Shown here: positions 54,168 to 64,000 of the stretch, one piece after another
How the letters are laid out: every line of letters begins with the position of its first letter
Numbering within the stretch: position 1 is the first letter of the stretch
From: Lepidodermella squamata
Lineage: Eukaryota > Animalia > Gastrotricha
NCBI GenBank assembly: GCA_047495785.1
Contig: JBLDXI010000032.1
Span: forward strand, 4,278,001 to 4,342,000
Direction of reading: 5' to 3'
DNA length: 64,000 bases
Made by a program: the position numbers and the translations under genes
Notes under the pieces: model-generated
Database searches by the model: none
What the model was told of the DNA's origin: nothing
Seen by the model: only the letters and a program-made list of their open reading frames with translations

Positions 54168-56985
54168 ATTTCAATCAAGATTACACCCCACTTTGGAGTA
54201 GAAGGAGAAGCCGCTATGTTTTTGCTGGGATGTTGAGCGATATTCAGTTGCGCGCCCTTCAGCTATACCGTGAGAACTGTATCGTTCCGGAATCAATAAA
54301 CACATTTTATTCAATATCAAAAACATGTTAGCCTATGTAAATTTTGCTTCAAGCCTATCGAGAGAGCGTTCAAATATTTCTATCGTGCGTTAAATCGATA
54401 TGTTCAGCGAATTTTCCAGCACCAGTCTCGTGATTGAGGTCAAATATACGCTCTCTCTCTCTCAAGAAAAATTGACCTCATTATTATTGGTGGTGGTCTC
54501 AGCGTGCTGTCTTAACTTTGAGATATTCGAAATGAAGCGTTGAGTGTATATTTCAATTCACTGATATACTGTATATGAATTTCTAAAATAAGAAAAATAT
54601 TGACCACTGATTGCAATAAAAATTGTCAAGAGGTTAAAAGAGCTATTCAACTTCGTTTGAAAATACATTGCGTAGCTACTCTCGGCATCGTCAGCGCAGC
54701 CAGCCATATCAGTGCCAGCGTTTGGGACAACGCGCAACGAAAAGCACAGCGGCGATCGCTGTGATGGAGATGCCGCCTCGAGGCGAATATTGCACGTGCG
54801 CGGCGACGATGCCTAGTTTCTTCGCTTTTTTGCTTCGCAGGCGTTGTCACGGTGATGCTGGTCGATTCGCACCTTTTGAACCATTTGTGTGCGGTTTGTT
54901 TGCCGACTTCAAAAAACATGCGCTGTTGTACATCAAAACGCGACGTGTTCTCAGCCAGGAAACATTTTGGCTTTAGCACAACTAACAAGTCAATTTCCGG
55001 CATCCAACGAAGGGAAATTATTGCTGCATATGCAGGATGATGGCCAAACCACAGCGGTTATCGCAATTTAGTACGGCACGTAATCTCAAGTTAAGACTTT
55101 CACTTCAAACGCCTTGGCTACGTGTGTGACCCGGAACATGTATTTATGATATAGTTCAACAATAATTTTTTAATCCGCCGAAAAATCCCATGCACAGGTG
55201 CTTATCCGTATTGACTTATTCTAGTAGCTGGTTTCCTGCTTTTTTCCAGGAGCTGGAAAACACCGAAAACAGTATTATTCTGCCGTATTTTCGCATAAAA
55301 ATATCTCGCGATAAATGAGCTGCTTTTAGCGGGTCGAAAAATAATGAACGCGATACGATCGCCACTGATTGCACGCTTGCATTGTTGTACTCTTTCATGA
55401 TATTCACATTCCTACTAATATCATTAACGTATTCGCCATTACTACGAGACGTAAAATTGGAGTTATAGATAAATACCATAGTTTTTCTGAACTCGAGCAC
55501 TACCCCAGTGCAATTTTAGTTCTTGCTTCATTTTTTAAGGCGTTTCCCAAATCTGACGCGCGCTGAGACATGGCGATGTCCAGGGGGATACAGGCCGAGC
55601 TTTTTTGCGTCAGGTCATTTCGCTTTTTCGTGTGATGTTAAATGTCGATGAGCTGGCGTGATGGGCCAAAAATGAGCGCCCCTGACCGCGCGCTCGGTCG
55701 TGCGCGCGCGCCCAACATACGTGGCAACAGCAAGTGCGATGATGTTGCCGCTCATGACAAGACATCGTGGCGCTGTCTCCGAGGCGGGCCGGCGCGTCTT
55801 TTCGTCAGAATCGATCATTATACGCGAGGCGCGTGCCGTGGTATCGATATTATTATCATAATTTTCAACACAGAAAGTGATGCGCTCTGTTTTCAAATGG
55901 TGATGCTAATAGGATTATTATTTTATCAAATGAAACACGTTTAGCTGGGCGGCCGCGCGATGCCCACAGTGTAGCAGCGATACGGCCATCACTGAGACAT
56001 GCCATCACATCACATATCGACACGTCGGGAATGTATAATCTAAATTTTATTATTTTATTATTAGTATTATTAGAAAGGGCCGAGAGACACGATGATGTCT
56101 CTGCGTTCCAAGATTTCTGGTGCGTCGTTATTTTGCATTACAATCGCGCGCGCGCGCGCAATGTAATCACATGCAATATAACGCGATTACAGCGTTGTCA
56201 CCGATAATCGCGCGCGCCCAGATAGATATCAGAGCGGCGACAACGCCAAGCGCCAACTGCTATTGCTGTTAATTTTATGCCGATCACGCTCCAGAACCAT
56301 CAATTCGGCACCAGTGCGCAAAATCAGTAACCATACCCTGGGCGTTAAGTCGATCGCCACAAAAGCTTTCGGCTCCTGTGCAAATTCCACATATACACAT
56401 GTGCGTGTTGCTATAAATACATCAAAACTATTAGCGTATTTTCTTAAGGCGGCTTTGCCCTGGTTTTAATTGGCGCATAGTGTTTTTTGTCAGACGATTT
56501 ATCCGCGGCATCAAAAAATGAAATAAACCACTGCAAGGACAATTCAAGGGCACTATATTTCGGCTGGTCTAATTCTTTTTATTAGGCGATACTAACGTCT
56601 TTGTTGAACTAACTATGACGACGCCCCTGGGGTGACCGGTATTAGCGTGATAGAGGGCGGCTCGTTAGACAAATTTTGAGCGTAATAAAATTTATGCACT
56701 CCTTTTTTAGTGATTTGTTTTGCGAAAATTGTCTAATAATAGCCGGAATAATAGCCAGAGCTAGTGTCTCGCGGGGTCATACTGCTCGCCTGCTTTCTTT
56801 CATCGATATATATTGCCATTGCATTATAGGAAGGTGTATTTTCCTTGGATTATGTATATTATTATCTGACATTTGTCAAACTGCCTTTTTGCGTATTACG
56901 AAAATTTCAACTGATGCTGATATTACTGTGGTGGAGAAGGCGCCTCGATGATTAAGCGCCGCCGATCCTCATCGCCCGGTAGCGA

Positions 56986-59900
56986 ATGAAAAAGTCCCGC
57001 ACGTGCGACGTGGTGTCGACGCCCTACTGCCTGACGCGAGCGCCCGGCATCTGCCAGACGTTCGACGATGGCCTCGTCGTCACGTCGCCGAAAAGCGACT
57101 CGGCCGACGAGCCCGACTTCCTCGCCGACCTGCGCCGCCCCGGCGACCTCACGCTCAGCGACCCGCTCATGCGCCGATCGCTTGCCTCGCTCGCCTACGG
57201 CTCCGAGGACCCACTCGACGACTCGGGACCGGTCACTCGAGTGACGATCAAGTCGGAAGACAATCCGCCGGCGTCGCCATCACAGCCTGACGGCAACTCG
57301 TTATCACGGCCAGTCACCCGCATACTAACCATCTCGCCGGATATCGACGAACGGCCGATAAGTAGTGCCGAAATGGAGACTAGCCTGAATTATTTAGACG
57401 CTGCGCCTCGAGCTAGCATGCGCCGGTTCAAGTTTAAACTCCGCTCGGTAGACAACAAGAAATCATTTTCATCGTCGATAAACACGGTCGACGGACCCCC
57501 GCCCTCGCCGAAGCCGGTTTTCGCCGAGAAATCTTTCTTCTACTTTGAGCGGGATAACGCGTTCAGGAGAAGCGCGTACAGTCTAATCACCTGGCGGGTA
57601 AATTCCGGATTTTTTCCGATTTTTTCTTCATTTCTCTAAATTTTATGATAGTGGTTCGAGCGGTTTTCAATATTTGTGATCATACTGAACTGCATCGCTC
57701 TTGGTGCCGTTGACCCGTGTGATGCCGACTGCATAACGGCGAGATGCCAAGCTCTGGGCTGGGCCGAACTCGCCATATTTAGTTTCTTCTTTATTGAAAT
57801 GCTGCTAAAAATGTTCGCCATGGGCGTATTCGGCGTTGGCTCCTATTTGGCAGAGCCGTGGAACCGTTTCGATTGTTTCATAGTCATTATCGGTCTTGTC
57901 GAGTACATGTTCGTTGAGGAGGATCTCAACATATCCGCTATCCGGGCTTTCCGCGTCTTCAGACCGCTCCGTGCTATAACCCGGATACCAAGTGCGTAGA
58001 TTTCACCCTAATTTTAGTTTTATTTCCTCTATTATGATGCTTTCAAATAGGTCTTCGTTTGCTGATATTACTTTTGCTCGACACGATGCCCATGTTGGGC
58101 AACGTGCTTTTGTTTTGCTGTCTCGTGTTTTTCGTCTTCGGCATCGCCGGCGTGCAGCTGTTGGCCGGCGTGTTGCGCAACCGGTGCTTTTTCCCGGCCG
58201 CCTTAACCGATCACCTGACTAATGCAAGCTGGGCCAATGTGACAACCATGTCCCCGCTCACCCAATTCCCGCCGGCGTTCATGCCGCCCTACTACCACCA
58301 GCCGGCCGACGACTACATATGCTCGCCTGGCGACGGCGTGCTCAAATGCTCCGACATTCCTAGGTACGAACAACACGAGTCGATGTGCACCGAACTGTTC
58401 GGCGCCGATTCGCCCGAAGCCGAGCTGTGCGCACTCTGGGTTGCCAACTACACCGAGTGCCGGCCGGAGGGGCCAAACCCGGCTCGCGGCTCGCTCAGCT
58501 TCGACCACATTGGCGCGGCGTGGATGGCCATTTTCCAGGTCATCTCGCTCGAAGGCTGGACTAGGGTTATGTACTACGTCCAGGTATAGCGGCATTTTTT
58601 GAATTTTGCTGACTTTGTTCATGCTCTTGTTTTAGGACGCGTACTCATTCTGGATCTGGATCTATTTTATTATGCTTGTTGTGGTAAGTTTTTGTGTTGT
58701 TATGTATCGATTTGCATTCTTCCTTCTGAAAAACATAAACAAAGGCGTAAACTAAATTAGATCGTAACAAACCATTAGGGAATAGCAATAATTATAAACG
58801 AATTATTTTGGTACACACACACATAAGTGCTGTTTTGTTTTCTTGTAGACCGGATCTTTTTTCGCTGTGAATTTGTGTCTAGTCGTCATAGCTACTCAAT
58901 TCACCGAGACTAAGCGGCGAGAGACTTCGAAAATGGTAAAATATGAAAGAATGAATGAAAAGGAGAAGAAATGATTGCAAAAATCAGCTTTCAGCATTCA
59001 GTTTGTTCCTTCTTTGACGCATTTTTGTGATTTATAGAAAGCTGAAAGGCGACTGGAACGCAAATCCTCGATGACAAGTGCGGCGACCACAGGCACTTTA
59101 GGAGACCAAGGCAACTTTTATACGCAAGTCTACGACATCATCGCCCTGCTGCTGGGTGCCATTCTCGAGTTATGCTTCAAAATGTGTCGTAAACGGCGGG
59201 AACAGCGAGAGCGGCGTCGCCAGAATCCCAAGTCAGTTGCTCACGCGAGTTTTGAACTCGAGGTCGTCAGCCAGGCCGATGGCGAGCCGGAGCCGTCGTG
59301 CGGCGCCTCGATGCTCACGAATGACGTCAGCAGTTTGCGGGGCGGAGGCGACTCGCCGCAGCCCTCCGAGGCGCTCGCTAGCCGCCCGGTGACTCGCGCG
59401 ACGCAGACTCCCCACCGCAGTTGTATGCAGCGGCTCATGGATGAAATCGACATGAACCGGGCATTTTGCCGCCGTCTGCTCGAACACAACATCGTTACAG
59501 GAACTGTCATAACTGTGATAGTGGTGAATGCCACTTTCATGGCAATGGAACACCATGGCCAGGTATAACTTGCCCTGTTTTTTTCTGGTTAATTCATTTT
59601 TTGTCTTTGATTAAAGCCTCAAGAGCTGACGAGACTGTTCAGCGTTCTGGATCCATTTTTTTCATACTTTTTCGCCGTTGAAGTTTTACTCAAAATTTAC
59701 GCTTACGGTTTTCCGCTTTACATTCGCGACTGCCTTAATTTGCTCGATCTGGTCACTGTTTGTATCAAGTAAATTTAGGGTCAGCTGAGTGAACGTTTTT
59801 AAAACGCTGTTTTTTTCAGTTTGTACGAATTATTTGATGGTCACGGTTCCAAGCTGTCGGTGCTGCGGACGTTCCGGCTGTTGCGCGTGCTCAAAATTGT

Positions 59901-62900
59901 GCGCTTCCTGCCGCAACTGCAACGACAGCTCTACGTCATGTTGCGAACAATAGACAACATCGCAACGTTCTTCATCCTGCTCAGCTTTTTCCTATTCATC
60001 TTCGCCCTACTCGGCATGTCGCTGTTCGGCTGCCGTTTCTGTCCTTACTACGAAAAACCAGTCAAGATTCGCCCTACAACGCCGTCTCCATACGATTCTG
60101 ACGTCGTGCCGGCCTATTTTCACGGGAAAGACGGCCCTGGGTGTTTCTTTAAAGTCGTACCTCTCGACGGAGGGGATCCAAATGCCACCTCTGACCCACT
60201 CAACAACCAGGTGGCATCTATGGGCGATATGACCAATTTGTCGCCTTACGAACGGCATTTACTTGCTTATTTCACGTGCCCTCGGGCGAATTTCGACTCA
60301 CTCTTGCTGTCGCTTTTCACGGTTTTACAAGTCTTCACGCAGGATGCCTGGTCGCTGGTCCTAATTGATGGCATTTACTACGGCTCAGATTGGGCGGGAC
60401 TGTACTTTGTCGCTTTAGTAACCATCGGCAACTATGTTCTGTTCAATCTGCTCGTCGCCATTTTGGTTGAAGGCTTCAGTGGAGGGGTTGGTTTCTTTCA
60501 TCGTTTGTCCCCATTGCCTGAGTCTATATTGATTCACAGGGCGAAGATTCAATGTCTAACGCGGGGAGCAGGCATGAAATGACCGAAGCAATCTCGCCAA
60601 AGCTCGACCTTTTAAGGCTTCAAGCTCCTGAAATAGTCATCGACGTAAGACCTTTCTCATTGTTGATATATATTACCTGATTAATTAATTAAAAACATTC
60701 GGAAATTAATATATAGGCTTCCAAAAAACAGGCAAGATTGAGTTTGAACCCCCGTGTGAAGAACTGGAACTTTATCGTGATTTTGCACTATTAAATTCCT
60801 CGACTATTTTTCTGAATTTCCATTGTTTGCTCGAAAATTGTAAGAACTCCTCAGACATTTTATTCTTATTCCAGAATTACGATGCTGAATCAAACGCCAG
60901 CCCATCCGTCACCTCTGACGGGCCGAAAATGAAGCTCGGTGCGAAAGTGGAGCCTATTATGGAGGAAAACAACTCACAAAAACCAGTTGAGCCTAATCCA
61001 GAGGGCGGCGCACCTGTAGAAGAAGTTCCAGCCGATAGCCTTAATCCTGAAGCTCCGAAAAAGTTGACATCCCGTTCTGCGAGCCTTCGTGCATCTGTCG
61101 AGGCTGGAATAGCTCCGTTAAAAGCTCGTGCAACTTATTCTTTATACGTACTGCCTCTATCGAATCCTTTCCGCCGCCGTCTGATGAAAATCGTGCTGTC
61201 GAGCCAGTTTGACAATACCATTCTCCTGTTCATTCTAGCCAACTGCTTCGTCATCATGCTGGAGCGCCCGGCGATAAAACGCGATTCTTTCGAGCGATTT
61301 TGCATCGACATGGCCAACTACGTCTTCAATGTGCTTTTCCTCGTCGAGGCGTTCGCGAAGATCATAGCCTTGGGGTTCATTATTGGGCCGGATGCTTATC
61401 TGAAGAGCGGCTGGAATGTTCTTGACTTTTTCCTCGTCAACTGCTCAACGACATTCACAGTGTTGGAACTGGTGTCACCGAAAAGTTCTGAGACGAAGAT
61501 TCTCGAAATTTTTCGTGTTTTGCGGCTACTTCGAGCATTACGACCGCTTCGAGTTGTCAACAGAGCGCCAGGGTTGAAAATCGTCGTTGAAACCTTACTG
61601 CTATCAGTCAAACCCATCGGAAATGTCATCATTATCTGCCTAACTTTCTTCTTGATTTTCTCCATCCTCGGCGTCCAGCTATTTCAAGGCTGCTTCTACG
61701 AATGCTCGGCGTCGAAAGGCGACTTGGGGAATAATCGAACTGCCTTTACTACAGCCGGAACTCTGATGTCTTTCTACAACGCGACCGCCAGTAAGGAAGC
61801 CGTTTACTCGCCAGATCGTGAGCAGTTGCGGATTTATCAGGCTCTATACAGCGTTCGTACTAAGGATGACTGCCTCGCGCTGGGCTTCGAGTGGGAAAAC
61901 GAACGCCTTAATTTCGACAACATTTTACAAGCTCTGATGACGCTGTTCGTTTTCTCGACATTTGACGGATGGGTGGACATTACTCGCGACGCTATTGATT
62001 GTGTCGGCGTCGACATGCAGCCGAGACGGGATCACAACCCGTGGAACGTCATTTTTTTCGTATCTTTCCTGCTCATCGTCTGCTTTTTTGTAAGTTTCTT
62101 GTCGGATTTAATCAACAGAATTGATAAAACAAATTTACTACAGATTCTGAACATGTTCGTCGGTGTGGTTGTTCACAACTTTCAAAAGGTTCAAGAACGC
62201 GTTCGGGCCGAGTTCAAAGCTAAGAAACTGCTGCAGAAACAAGAAAAGCTGTTGAACCGGCTTCGGAAACGCTCTCAAATGAACCCTAACCGTCAAAGTA
62301 AGTTCTGCGAAATTCCTTTGTCATGTCCTTTATTCGTGGTGTCGTTTTAGGACTTCTGGTTAAGCTTACTAAACGAAGCCCAATGACGCGAGTTACGCAG
62401 ACCTCGCCGGCTCTTCAAACTCTCGACGCGACCTTGGCCAATCTTGAAGCCTCCCCAGCAATTACGCTATCCTCCTCGATTCCAGCCGTGAAAGTATCGG
62501 TCGAGAACAAAGCGCCTGCCGAAGATCTGTCCTTCCTCGAGGAATATCCCTACTGGCGGCTTGTGACGTATCAAATCTTCACTCACAAGTACTTTGAGCT
62601 TGTTCTCGCGGCAATAACAGCCCTAAACATCCTGGTTATGGCTATCGAATTCTACGAAATGCCTCCAGAGTTGCAAATGGCCGTCAAAATAATCGGCTAC
62701 GTATTCACGGCTCTTCTCGTGCTCGAAGTCTTCGCCAAAGTTGCTGCTTTCGGCTTCTATCGCTACATCAGAGAACGCTGGAACCAGCTGGACGTCGCTA
62801 TTGTTTTCCTATCATTCGGCGCCATCTATTTAGAAGACGCCTCATCGGTAGTCATTCCGGTCAATCCGACTCTGATTCGAGTAGCCCGCATTGTTCGAAT

Positions 62901-63968
62901 CGCTCGTGTTTTCAAACTACTGAAAACCGCGTCCGGAATTCGCCGGCTTCTCGACACGGTTGGCCGCGCCCTGCCTCAAGTCGGCAACTTGACCTTGTTC
63001 TTCCTTCTTCTATTCTTCATCTACGCCTCGTTAGGCGTTGAAGTAACTAATTTATCTAATTATTTTCCGTTGATACTGGAATAATGTATTTTCAGCTGTT
63101 TGGCAAATTTGATGGCGAGTATGGCAAGTGTGAAGGCCTGTCGCGCCACGCCAACTTCCACAACTTCGGCATTGCCCTGTTGACGCTGTTCCGCATTTTC
63201 ACCGGTGACGACTGGAACGGCATCCTCAAGGACATGCTGCGGTTGTCGAACAATAAGGAAGAGTGCGCGCTGCTGATGAAATCGGCCGCCAATGCGACGC
63301 CCGATCGCGATTTCAACATCGAGTGCACCATCGCCGGCGTCCTCGCGCCCTTCTACTTTGTCTCGTTCGTGCTATTCGCCCAGTTCGTGCTGATCAACGT
63401 CGTCGTAGCTGTCCTCATGAATGAGCTTGAGGTAATAATGGTGTTCACTAGCTTTGAGAAGATTGATCTTGACTTGTTCTCTCTTGGCGCGTTCAATAGA
63501 GAATGGTAAAATGATTGCACCATTGATTTATTGACTCAACCATTTTTGAGCACTCTGACATTAACTGACGCTCTTCCCTTTACATCGCTGTATATTTAGA
63601 ACATACTTCAAAACGCCTGAATTGAACCCCGCCTTGAGGATTTATCCGCGAGAGTGGCAAACTTTTGCACGTTCGCATTTGATTTTTCCAATTTTTTCAG
63701 TGAAACATCATCCATGCTTTCAATATATATGTTTATCCGAGGCACATATCGTTATTCGTTATTTCCCAACAGCAATTACTAATCCATTATTTTTCATCAA
63801 TATTTATGCTTATATTGGCTAACAATTTGATGTGATTTCATTCCACAGGAGTCACATCGCCGCGATGCAATGGAAAAGCTGGAGAGACCTGAAAATGCCG
63901 ACGAGGAAAATATCGAGCAAAAAGCGGCCGTTATGGAGGAAATCGTTAAAACAGCTTGCCAAGACCTG
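56986..63968 (+). CDS. Voltage-gated T-type (Cav3-family) calcium channel alpha1 subunit, 3'-partial (continues past window)
   Basis: Four repeats with S4 segments ([60 protein letters not shown]); Cav3-typical [53 protein letters not shown]. Approximate exons 56986-57597, 57652-57991, 58051-58583, 58636-58683, 58849-58934, 59038-59562, 59617-59768, 59820-60486, 60540-60643, 60875-62089, 62144-62297, 62351-63042, 63096-63431, 63849-63968. Confidence 0.93.
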
Positions 63969-64000
63969 GTAAATTAATTAAGATTATTTGCAATATTTTC

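Follow-up and report, generated by a model that had tools for sequence, protein, structure and literature searches.

A 64,000-nucleotide stretch of the genome of the gastrotrich Lepidodermella squamata (GenBank assembly GCA_047495785.1, contig JBLDXI010000032.1, here contig C32, C32:4278001-4342000; hereafter the window) contains, towards its end, a gene of the Cav3 (T-type) calcium channel family, called gene A in the following. The high-field-strength (HFS) ring of its selectivity filter is E-D-D-D instead of E-E-D-D, the HFS+1 or 'beacon' Asp of domain II is replaced by Ala, and a +1 Asp is present in domain IV, straight across the pore. We propose, with a probability of about 60%, that gene A would encode a voltage-gated channel of lower Ca2+ selectivity and higher Na+ permeability, in which the outer Ca2+ site is kept. 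The gene is spliced and lies on the + strand, from about position 56986 of the window to past its end; its introns are about 50-190 nt long, and the GC content of the window is about 44%.

The residues on which this reading is built can be given codon by codon. A six-frame regular-expression search over 56000-64000 yields exactly four P-loop motifs, all on the + strand. These are SLEGW in domain I (58545-58559; filter codon GAA, Glu, at 58551), TQDAW in domain II (60337-60351; GAT, Asp, at 60343, then GCC, Ala, at 60346), TFDGW in domain III (61958-61972; GAC, Asp, at 61964, preceded by TTT, Phe) and TGDDW in domain IV (63201-63215; GAC, Asp, at 63207, then GAC, Asp, at 63210). Gapless phmmer alignments to human Cav3 place 'islegwtrv' on 'itlegwvdi' in domain I (a longer stretch, 13 protein letters not shown, on 'itlegwvdimyyv'), 'ftqdaw' on 'ltqedw' in domain II, with the Asp opposite the Glu of QEDW, and 'ftgddwngi' on 'stgdnwngi' in domain IV. 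Compared with the residues expected of a Cav3 filter, namely Glu in domains I and II, Asp in domains III and IV and Asp at HFS+1 of domain II, gene A has the Glu of domain I and the Asp of domains III and IV, but Asp for Glu in domain II and Ala for the Asp that follows it. A further Asp is lost in the outer ring of domain I (+4, 58560-58568, EGWTR), where gene A has Arg and human Cav3 has Asp (EGWVD); this position is Gln in the metagenomic orthologue described below and Asp or Glu in most paralogs. An earlier note on this DNA, made from its letters alone, had placed the four filter codons of an E-D-D-D ring at these same positions and had reported the domain II change to Ala and the domain IV gain of Asp, and all of this is borne out. 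It had also reported a change from Lys to Phe in domain III: Phe is indeed found at the site, but the site is variable: named Cav3s have K, R or M before the domain III Asp, some unnamed Cav3-like proteins have I, and Lys does not count as a conserved feature there.

Judged by homology, gene A is a four-domain voltage-gated channel gene of the Cav3 family, as the earlier note had proposed. When each pore exon is compared by phmmer with all PDB chains, human Cav3.2, Cav3.1 and Cav3.3 are the best matches; for the domain II exon, the E value is 1e-58 to Cav3.2 vs 9e-31 to Cav2.2, with all Cav1 and Cav2 chains at 1e-30 or weaker. In the first of two trees built from query-anchored pieces, gene A nests in the Cav3 clade (97 in the SH-like approximate likelihood-ratio test, SH-aLRT). 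Arg/Lys repeats are retained in all four S4 segments. Two narrower assignments were considered and set aside. The domain IV +1 Asp, by its sequence position, is the NALCN-type beacon arrangement, but the ring is EDDD and not EEKE, EKEE or EEEE, and the gene groups with Cav3. The cnidarian-type Na+-permeable Cav3 (Class Ib; PMC10120453), which combines an EEDD ring with a neutral residue other than Gly at +1 of domain II and has no other beacon Asp, would fit the neutral domain II +1 residue, but neither the EDDD ring nor the domain IV +1 Asp.

Published work bears on what these substitutions may mean for function. In Cav3 channels the ring has been described as 'always EEDD' and the domain II +1 beacon Asp as 'always' present, one cnidarian gene excepted; this Asp faces the domain IV Asn across the pore, and a beacon Asp in domain IV is found in NALCN and some non-animal Cavs (Spafford, PMC10120453). 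With Asn in place of the +1 Asp of domain II, the Na+-dependent current goes up from 1.3- to 6.5-fold in hCav3.2, and in LCav3-12b from 2.3- to 8.6-fold (Guan et al., PMC9694082). A Cav3.1 mutant with an EDDD ring is functional; its activation is shifted slightly to negative voltages and is faster, and it deactivates more slowly (Garza-Lopez et al., bioRxiv 10.1101/626069). According to that preprint, which cites Garza-Lopez 2016 (Cell Calcium), its Cd2+ block is reduced and its permeability to Cd2+, Mn2+ and Na+ is increased. Taken together, these mutants suggest a higher Na+ permeability of gene A, in which the EDDD ring is combined with a missing +1 Asp in domain II, a missing outer Asp in domain I and an extra Asp in domain IV. 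In the mechanism that we propose, the protein would still conduct cations under voltage control; Ca2+ selectivity would be lowered, and permeability to Na+ and other cations increased, by the shorter carboxylate in domain II together with the loss of the beacon there. The domain IV Asp could preserve the outer Ca2+ site, so that external Ca2+ might still bind or block. The pore selectivity of gene A is thus probably altered, as a prediction made at the sequence level.

Gene A does not stand alone. Most invertebrates are said to have one Cav3 gene. When the domain III and domain II exons were searched against the genome (121.2 Mb in 151 contigs), followed by local tblastn on the fetched loci, 14 Cav3-type genes were found, eight of which (A to H, gene A first) are in tandem on C32; the loci are C32:4345k-4485k, C38:597-604k, C13:3434-3442k, C12:1117-1123k, C15:3888-3895k, C42:4097-4102k and C20:2643-2647k. 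The proposal that gene A might be a divergent extra Cav3 paralog is therefore upheld. In the tandem series, the domain II and domain IV motifs are QDAW and GDDW in A, QDSW and GDKW in B, QDSW and GDNW in C, QDDW and GDNW in D, QDDW and GDDW in E, RDDW and GDNW in F, QDSW and GDNW in G, and QDAW and GDNW in H. Elsewhere, they are QEAW and GDNW in I (C38), QDDGW and GDRW in J (C13), RDNW and GDDW in K (C12), QESW and GDNW in L (C15), and QDDGW and GDNW in M (C42), while N (C20), known from its domain II exon alone, has QDDDW. The domain II filter residue is thus Asp in 12 genes and Glu in two (I and L), and the canonical QEDW is found in 0/14. Of the 13 genes in which domain IV could be read, only A, E and K have Asp at +1 of that domain. 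The beacon Asp is found in domain II in D, F, J, M and N, in domain IV in A and K, in both in E, and in neither in B, C, G, H, I and L.

These motifs bear on two further points raised earlier. That the outer Asp is relocated from domain II to domain IV is true of gene A, but no consistent compensation is seen among its paralogs: H (QDAW/GDNW) has neither Asp, E (QDDW/GDDW) has both, and B combines QDSW with GDKW, so that the presence of the Asp in domain IV is not tied to its loss in domain II. 'Relocation' describes gene A and is not a rule of the family. As for a second, EEDD-type Cav3 in the genome, which had been suggested as a check, the outcome is positive, as I and L do have the Glu of domain II, but both are without the domain II +1 Asp; they fit the cnidarian-type Na+-permeable class Ib. 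Other paralogs have peculiarities of their own. In J, M and N the domain II filter is longer by one inserted residue (TQDDGW, TQDDDW), and the J orthologue of another species keeps this insertion; B (L011:8982-9098) has a Lys at domain IV +1 (TGDKW), a positive charge directly over the ring. About six Nav-like domain III matches were also seen (C21:227k, C2:375k/386k/414k/1856k and C21:667k), and the only one that was read has FESW (Glu, Nav2-type).

The filter of gene A is rare elsewhere and conserved in a relative. P-loops were extracted from the 150 representatives that an exhaustive HMMER search yielded for the domain III exon. The named Cav3s among them (Branchiostoma, Ciona, Phallusia, hagfish, pike, Lymnaea, Helobdella, Apis, Ixodes, Gordionus, Panagrolaimus, Litomosoides, Trichinella, Adineta and Hydra) all have QEDW in domain II, and GDNW wherever the domain IV loop was found; a +1 Asp in domain IV, as in gene A, is absent from the Cav3-type proteins of this set. 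The domain II motif could be located in 74 of 120 exon-sized homologues of that exon and reads TQEDW in 71/74, the exceptions being metagenome proteins of one ENA study and teleost 'alpha-1H-like' predictions. One metagenome contig (L031) carries an orthologue of gene A in which all four motifs, SLEGW/TQDAW/TFDGW/TGDDW, are identical. Orthologues of other paralogs were also found, of B in L034 (QDSW), of J in L032 and L033 (QDDGW/GDHW) and of I in P0183 (QESW). Between gene A and its L031 orthologue, synonymous divergence (dS) is saturated, so that the Nei-Gojobori (NG86) estimate is undefined, and non-synonymous divergence (dN) is 0.15-0.30. Identical motifs at saturated dS indicate that the paralogs, each with its own filter, already existed when two well-diverged species separated and have been retained ever since. 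On L031 (6129-10871), a CUB-domain gene and a short-chain dehydrogenase come after the orthologue of A, in the place where the B orthologue would be expected; the tandem order is therefore either not conserved or later in origin.

The second tree, of the domain III region, was computed with IQ-TREE, after removal of intron read-through from C and L and trimming of G, and with N left out. The copies from the genome and those from the metagenome all group together within Cav3 (98/93), with L in a basal position, followed by an unresolved split into I, J+M, A+H+B and C-G+K (95/89). The L031 orthologue groups with A (100/99), and B and J pair with their own metagenome orthologues. The monophyly of all Asp-type genes is not rejected (approximately unbiased test, p-AU 0.41), so that the data would allow for one old change from E to D. 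A natural E-D-D-D ring was also found in a predicted teleost protein, Oreochromis XP_039472111.1 (P0044; LEGW/QDDW/KDGW/GDNW), which according to the first tree arose independently, inside the vertebrate clade. Short teleost Cav3 paralogs with a domain II Asp, which depart from 'always EEDD' on their own, comprise this protein and P0157 (XP_025765789.1), both of Oreochromis niloticus type and with QDDW, and P0110 (Larimichthys) with PDHW. Three Cav3-like proteins of the bdelloid rotifer Rotaria sordida (P0022, P0305 and P0312) have LEKW or LKNW in domain I and no recognisable domain II or III motif; these odd pore loops may be mispredictions or belong to another divergent family.

Twelve exons could be set for gene A, all on the + strand and with GT-AG internal borders, save for the 3' end of exon 8. 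A tblastn search with a 2426-residue Cav3 matches residues 65-1879 in order over 57484-63431, and Pfam Ion_trans is found on eight open reading frame (ORF) pieces, exon pieces of all four domains. Exon 1 (56986..57597) would carry the putative start and the N-terminus to just before S1 of domain I (ORF, donor GT at 57598, tblastn from 57484). Domain I continues with exon 2 (57652..57991; S1-S4, Ion_trans at 1.6e-20, AG/GT borders), exon 3 (58051..58583; S5, turret and P-loop SLEGW), exon 4 (58636..58683; start of S6, AG/GT borders and continuous frame) and exon 5 (58849..58935; the remaining S6 and the start of the I-II linker, 68% identical to Cav3 by tblastn, with a putative donor). Exon 6 (59038..59562) holds the I-II linker, at the position of the gating brake, and S1 of domain II; exon 7 (59617..59768) holds S2-S3 (AG/GT borders, tblastn), and exon 8 (59820..60480) holds S4, S5, turret, P-loop TQDAW and S6. 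The domain II turret (S5-P, 60040-60280) has about 78 residues with four Cys, for about nine residues in human Cav3. Exon 9 (60875..62089) extends from the II-III linker through domain III S1 to most of S6 and includes TFDGW (Pfam, 1.8e-56). It is followed, after an in-frame intron of 54 nt (62090-62143), by exon 10 (62144..62297) with the end of S6 and the start of the III-IV linker. Exon 11 (62486..63042) covers S1-S5 of domain IV (Pfam, 5.6e-31; tblastn, 50% identity) and exon 12 (63096..63431) its turret, P-loop TGDDW and S6 (AG/GT borders). The C-terminal exons lie beyond 63431 and run past the window end. Joined exons, which were used in scripts only (stop check, classing of substitutions and query-anchored tree pieces), read without a stop over 986 codons for exons 1-8 and 754 codons for exons 9-12.

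The exon model was compared with contigs of a public DNA run (X1), which span the whole stretch at about 2% divergence. Among the 40 best-supported substitutions, 16 fall in introns or non-coding DNA and 24 in exons, of which 23 are synonymous and one, in the II-III linker, is non-synonymous. The indels are 7/7 outside exons, in predicted introns plus one (60748) in the II-III linker gap. The 23:1 ratio and the placement of the indels support the exon model and a strong purifying selection; as far as these substitutions tell, gene A is intact and selectively maintained. One X1 contig joint (63041 to 63165, side 26) fits no predicted intron and was disregarded. At the domain II pore (60198-60384), X1 gives two contigs, one equal to the window and the other with eight differences in 187 nt, which could be a second haplotype or strain, or a mixed culture.

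The most serious alternative to a Na+-permeable gene A is an ordinary Ca2+-selective T-type channel, in which the charge is kept, the +1 Asp has moved from domain II to domain IV, so that one acidic residue of the outer site is still there, and the filter has drifted near-neutrally in a redundant family. The conductance of the Cav3.1 EDDD mutant, with its small gating shifts only (10.1101/626069), speaks for it, as does the likewise E-D-D-D predicted Cav3 of Oreochromis, and in the scheme of Spafford (PMC10120453) a filter that is all-acidic and has its beacon Asp in domain IV counts as calcium-selective. However, the exact motif of each paralog is kept in a species with saturated synonymous sites, which indicates a specific constraint rather than drift; EDDD mutants are reported as more permeable to Na+, Cd2+ and Mn2+; and the outer-ring Asp of domain I is lost too, being Arg. 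We therefore regard this alternative as rather unlikely, although a result in its favour would be no great surprise.

Several points weigh against a less Ca2+-selective gene A. E-to-D is a conservative change, and the gating shifts of the Cav3.1 EDDD mutant are only modest; since the ring-and-beacon class of gene A is considered calcium-selective by Spafford, the relocated Asp may fully compensate. The gene model itself has a gap after exon 8, where the II-III linker exons are not fixed, and its C-terminus is outside the window. As for the gating brake, exon 6 has no PDB match by phmmer, and the I-II linker stretch gives no blastp alignment to other Cav3s. X1 may stem from the same culture as the assembly, and no RNA run covering the stretch was found among public sequencing runs, so that expression of gene A is only presumed.

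The other alternatives fare worse. A NALCN-like leak or sensor channel of low conductance, no longer a spike-generating T-type channel, would share the domain IV beacon Asp of NALCN (PMC10120453), but the S4 repeats, the position within Cav3 and not NALCN, and an HFS ring without Lys make it very improbable. That gene A could be a pseudogene or an artefact, such as a chimeric or erroneous tandem copy, gains some credit from the lack of an RNA run and, provided that the genome is the published L. squamata assembly, from the origin of that assembly in DNA amplified by multiple displacement amplification (MDA; PMC11660948). It is largely excluded by the unbroken frames and GT-AG introns, by the excess of synonymous substitutions and the indels outside exons, and by an independent metagenome contig whose orthologue has the same motifs. 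Sequencing error, which had been named as a possible refutation, fails, as X1 covers the stretch and the orthologue keeps the motifs. Least probable is an alternative exon or RNA editing that would restore QEDW in the message, because, even though alternative exons 12a/12b in the domain II turret are normal in protostome Cav3 genes (PMC9694082), domain II S4 to S6 lie in a single exon of gene A, so that this switch cannot operate there, no second domain II pore exon is found in 56000-64000 by permissive tblastn (E up to 50), no QEDW exon is found among the domain II pore-exon matches of the genome, and neither A-to-I nor C-to-U editing can turn GAT into GAA or GAG.

Beyond gene A, the family seems to generate pore diversity via gene duplication. 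One wider possibility, speculative and in our opinion doubtful, is that a gastrotrich radiation of 14 genes replaced the single protostome Cav3 with its exon-12 switch, and sampled almost every pairing of a filter residue (E or D) with a beacon state (in domain II, in domain IV, in both, in neither, or a Lys). Gene A could then represent a class not seen before, a channel of low threshold whose beacon is in domain IV as in NALCN, and which might carry a mainly Na+ or monovalent current under Ca2+ block. If this were true, such channels might supply fast inward currents in an animal whose other four-domain channels have rewritten filters too. The paralog series would show that gene duplication can stand in for the exon-12 splice switch, and it provides a panel, already tested by evolution, for the 'beacon' model of Ca2+/Na+ selectivity. 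To gene A itself, the present analysis adds the codons, the exon model, the polymorphism evidence, the orthologue, the comparison of 14 genes, the domain IV beacon and the teleost EDDD ring.

When compared with known systems, gene A is closest to canonical Cav3 channels (human Cav3.1-3.3, PDB 6KZO/9AYG/7WLI; Lymnaea LCav3), with which it shares the four-domain architecture, the best match in every domain, LEGW in domain I, Asp in domains III and IV, and conserved S4-S5, P-helices and S6. It differs from them by Asp instead of Glu and +1 Ala instead of Asp in domain II, by +1 Asp instead of Asn in domain IV, by Arg instead of Asp at +4 of domain I, by the length of its domain II turret relative to the human one, and by the absence of a 12a/12b pair. 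With the Oreochromis protein, of which we know of no functional study, it has a natural E-D-D-D ring in common, but the teleost still has Asp at +1 of domain II and Asn in domain IV. The engineered 'CatSper-like' Cav3.1 EDDD (Garza-Lopez et al.) has an identical ring in a Cav3 background and likewise retains Asp at +1 of domain II and Asn at +1 of domain IV, whereas the gene A filter is natural and conserved, with a relocated Asp. The Na+-permeable Cav3 forms (cnidarian Cav3a with domain II 'EN', LCav3-12a and the D975N/D1098N mutants; PMC9694082) resemble gene A in their non-acidic domain II +1 residue, but they keep the domain II Glu and the domain IV +1 Asn, two residues that are both Asp in gene A. 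NALCN and some non-animal Cavs (PMC10120453) also have the +1 Asp in domain IV and not in domain II, but with an EEKE, EKEE or EEEE ring, and NALCN belongs to another clade and has weak voltage gating. Gene A is thus a natural variant within a known channel family and not a new kind of system. It nevertheless belongs to a conserved natural series that breaks both rules stated for Cav3, the one that the ring is 'always EEDD' and the one that a +1 Asp is 'always' found in domain II.

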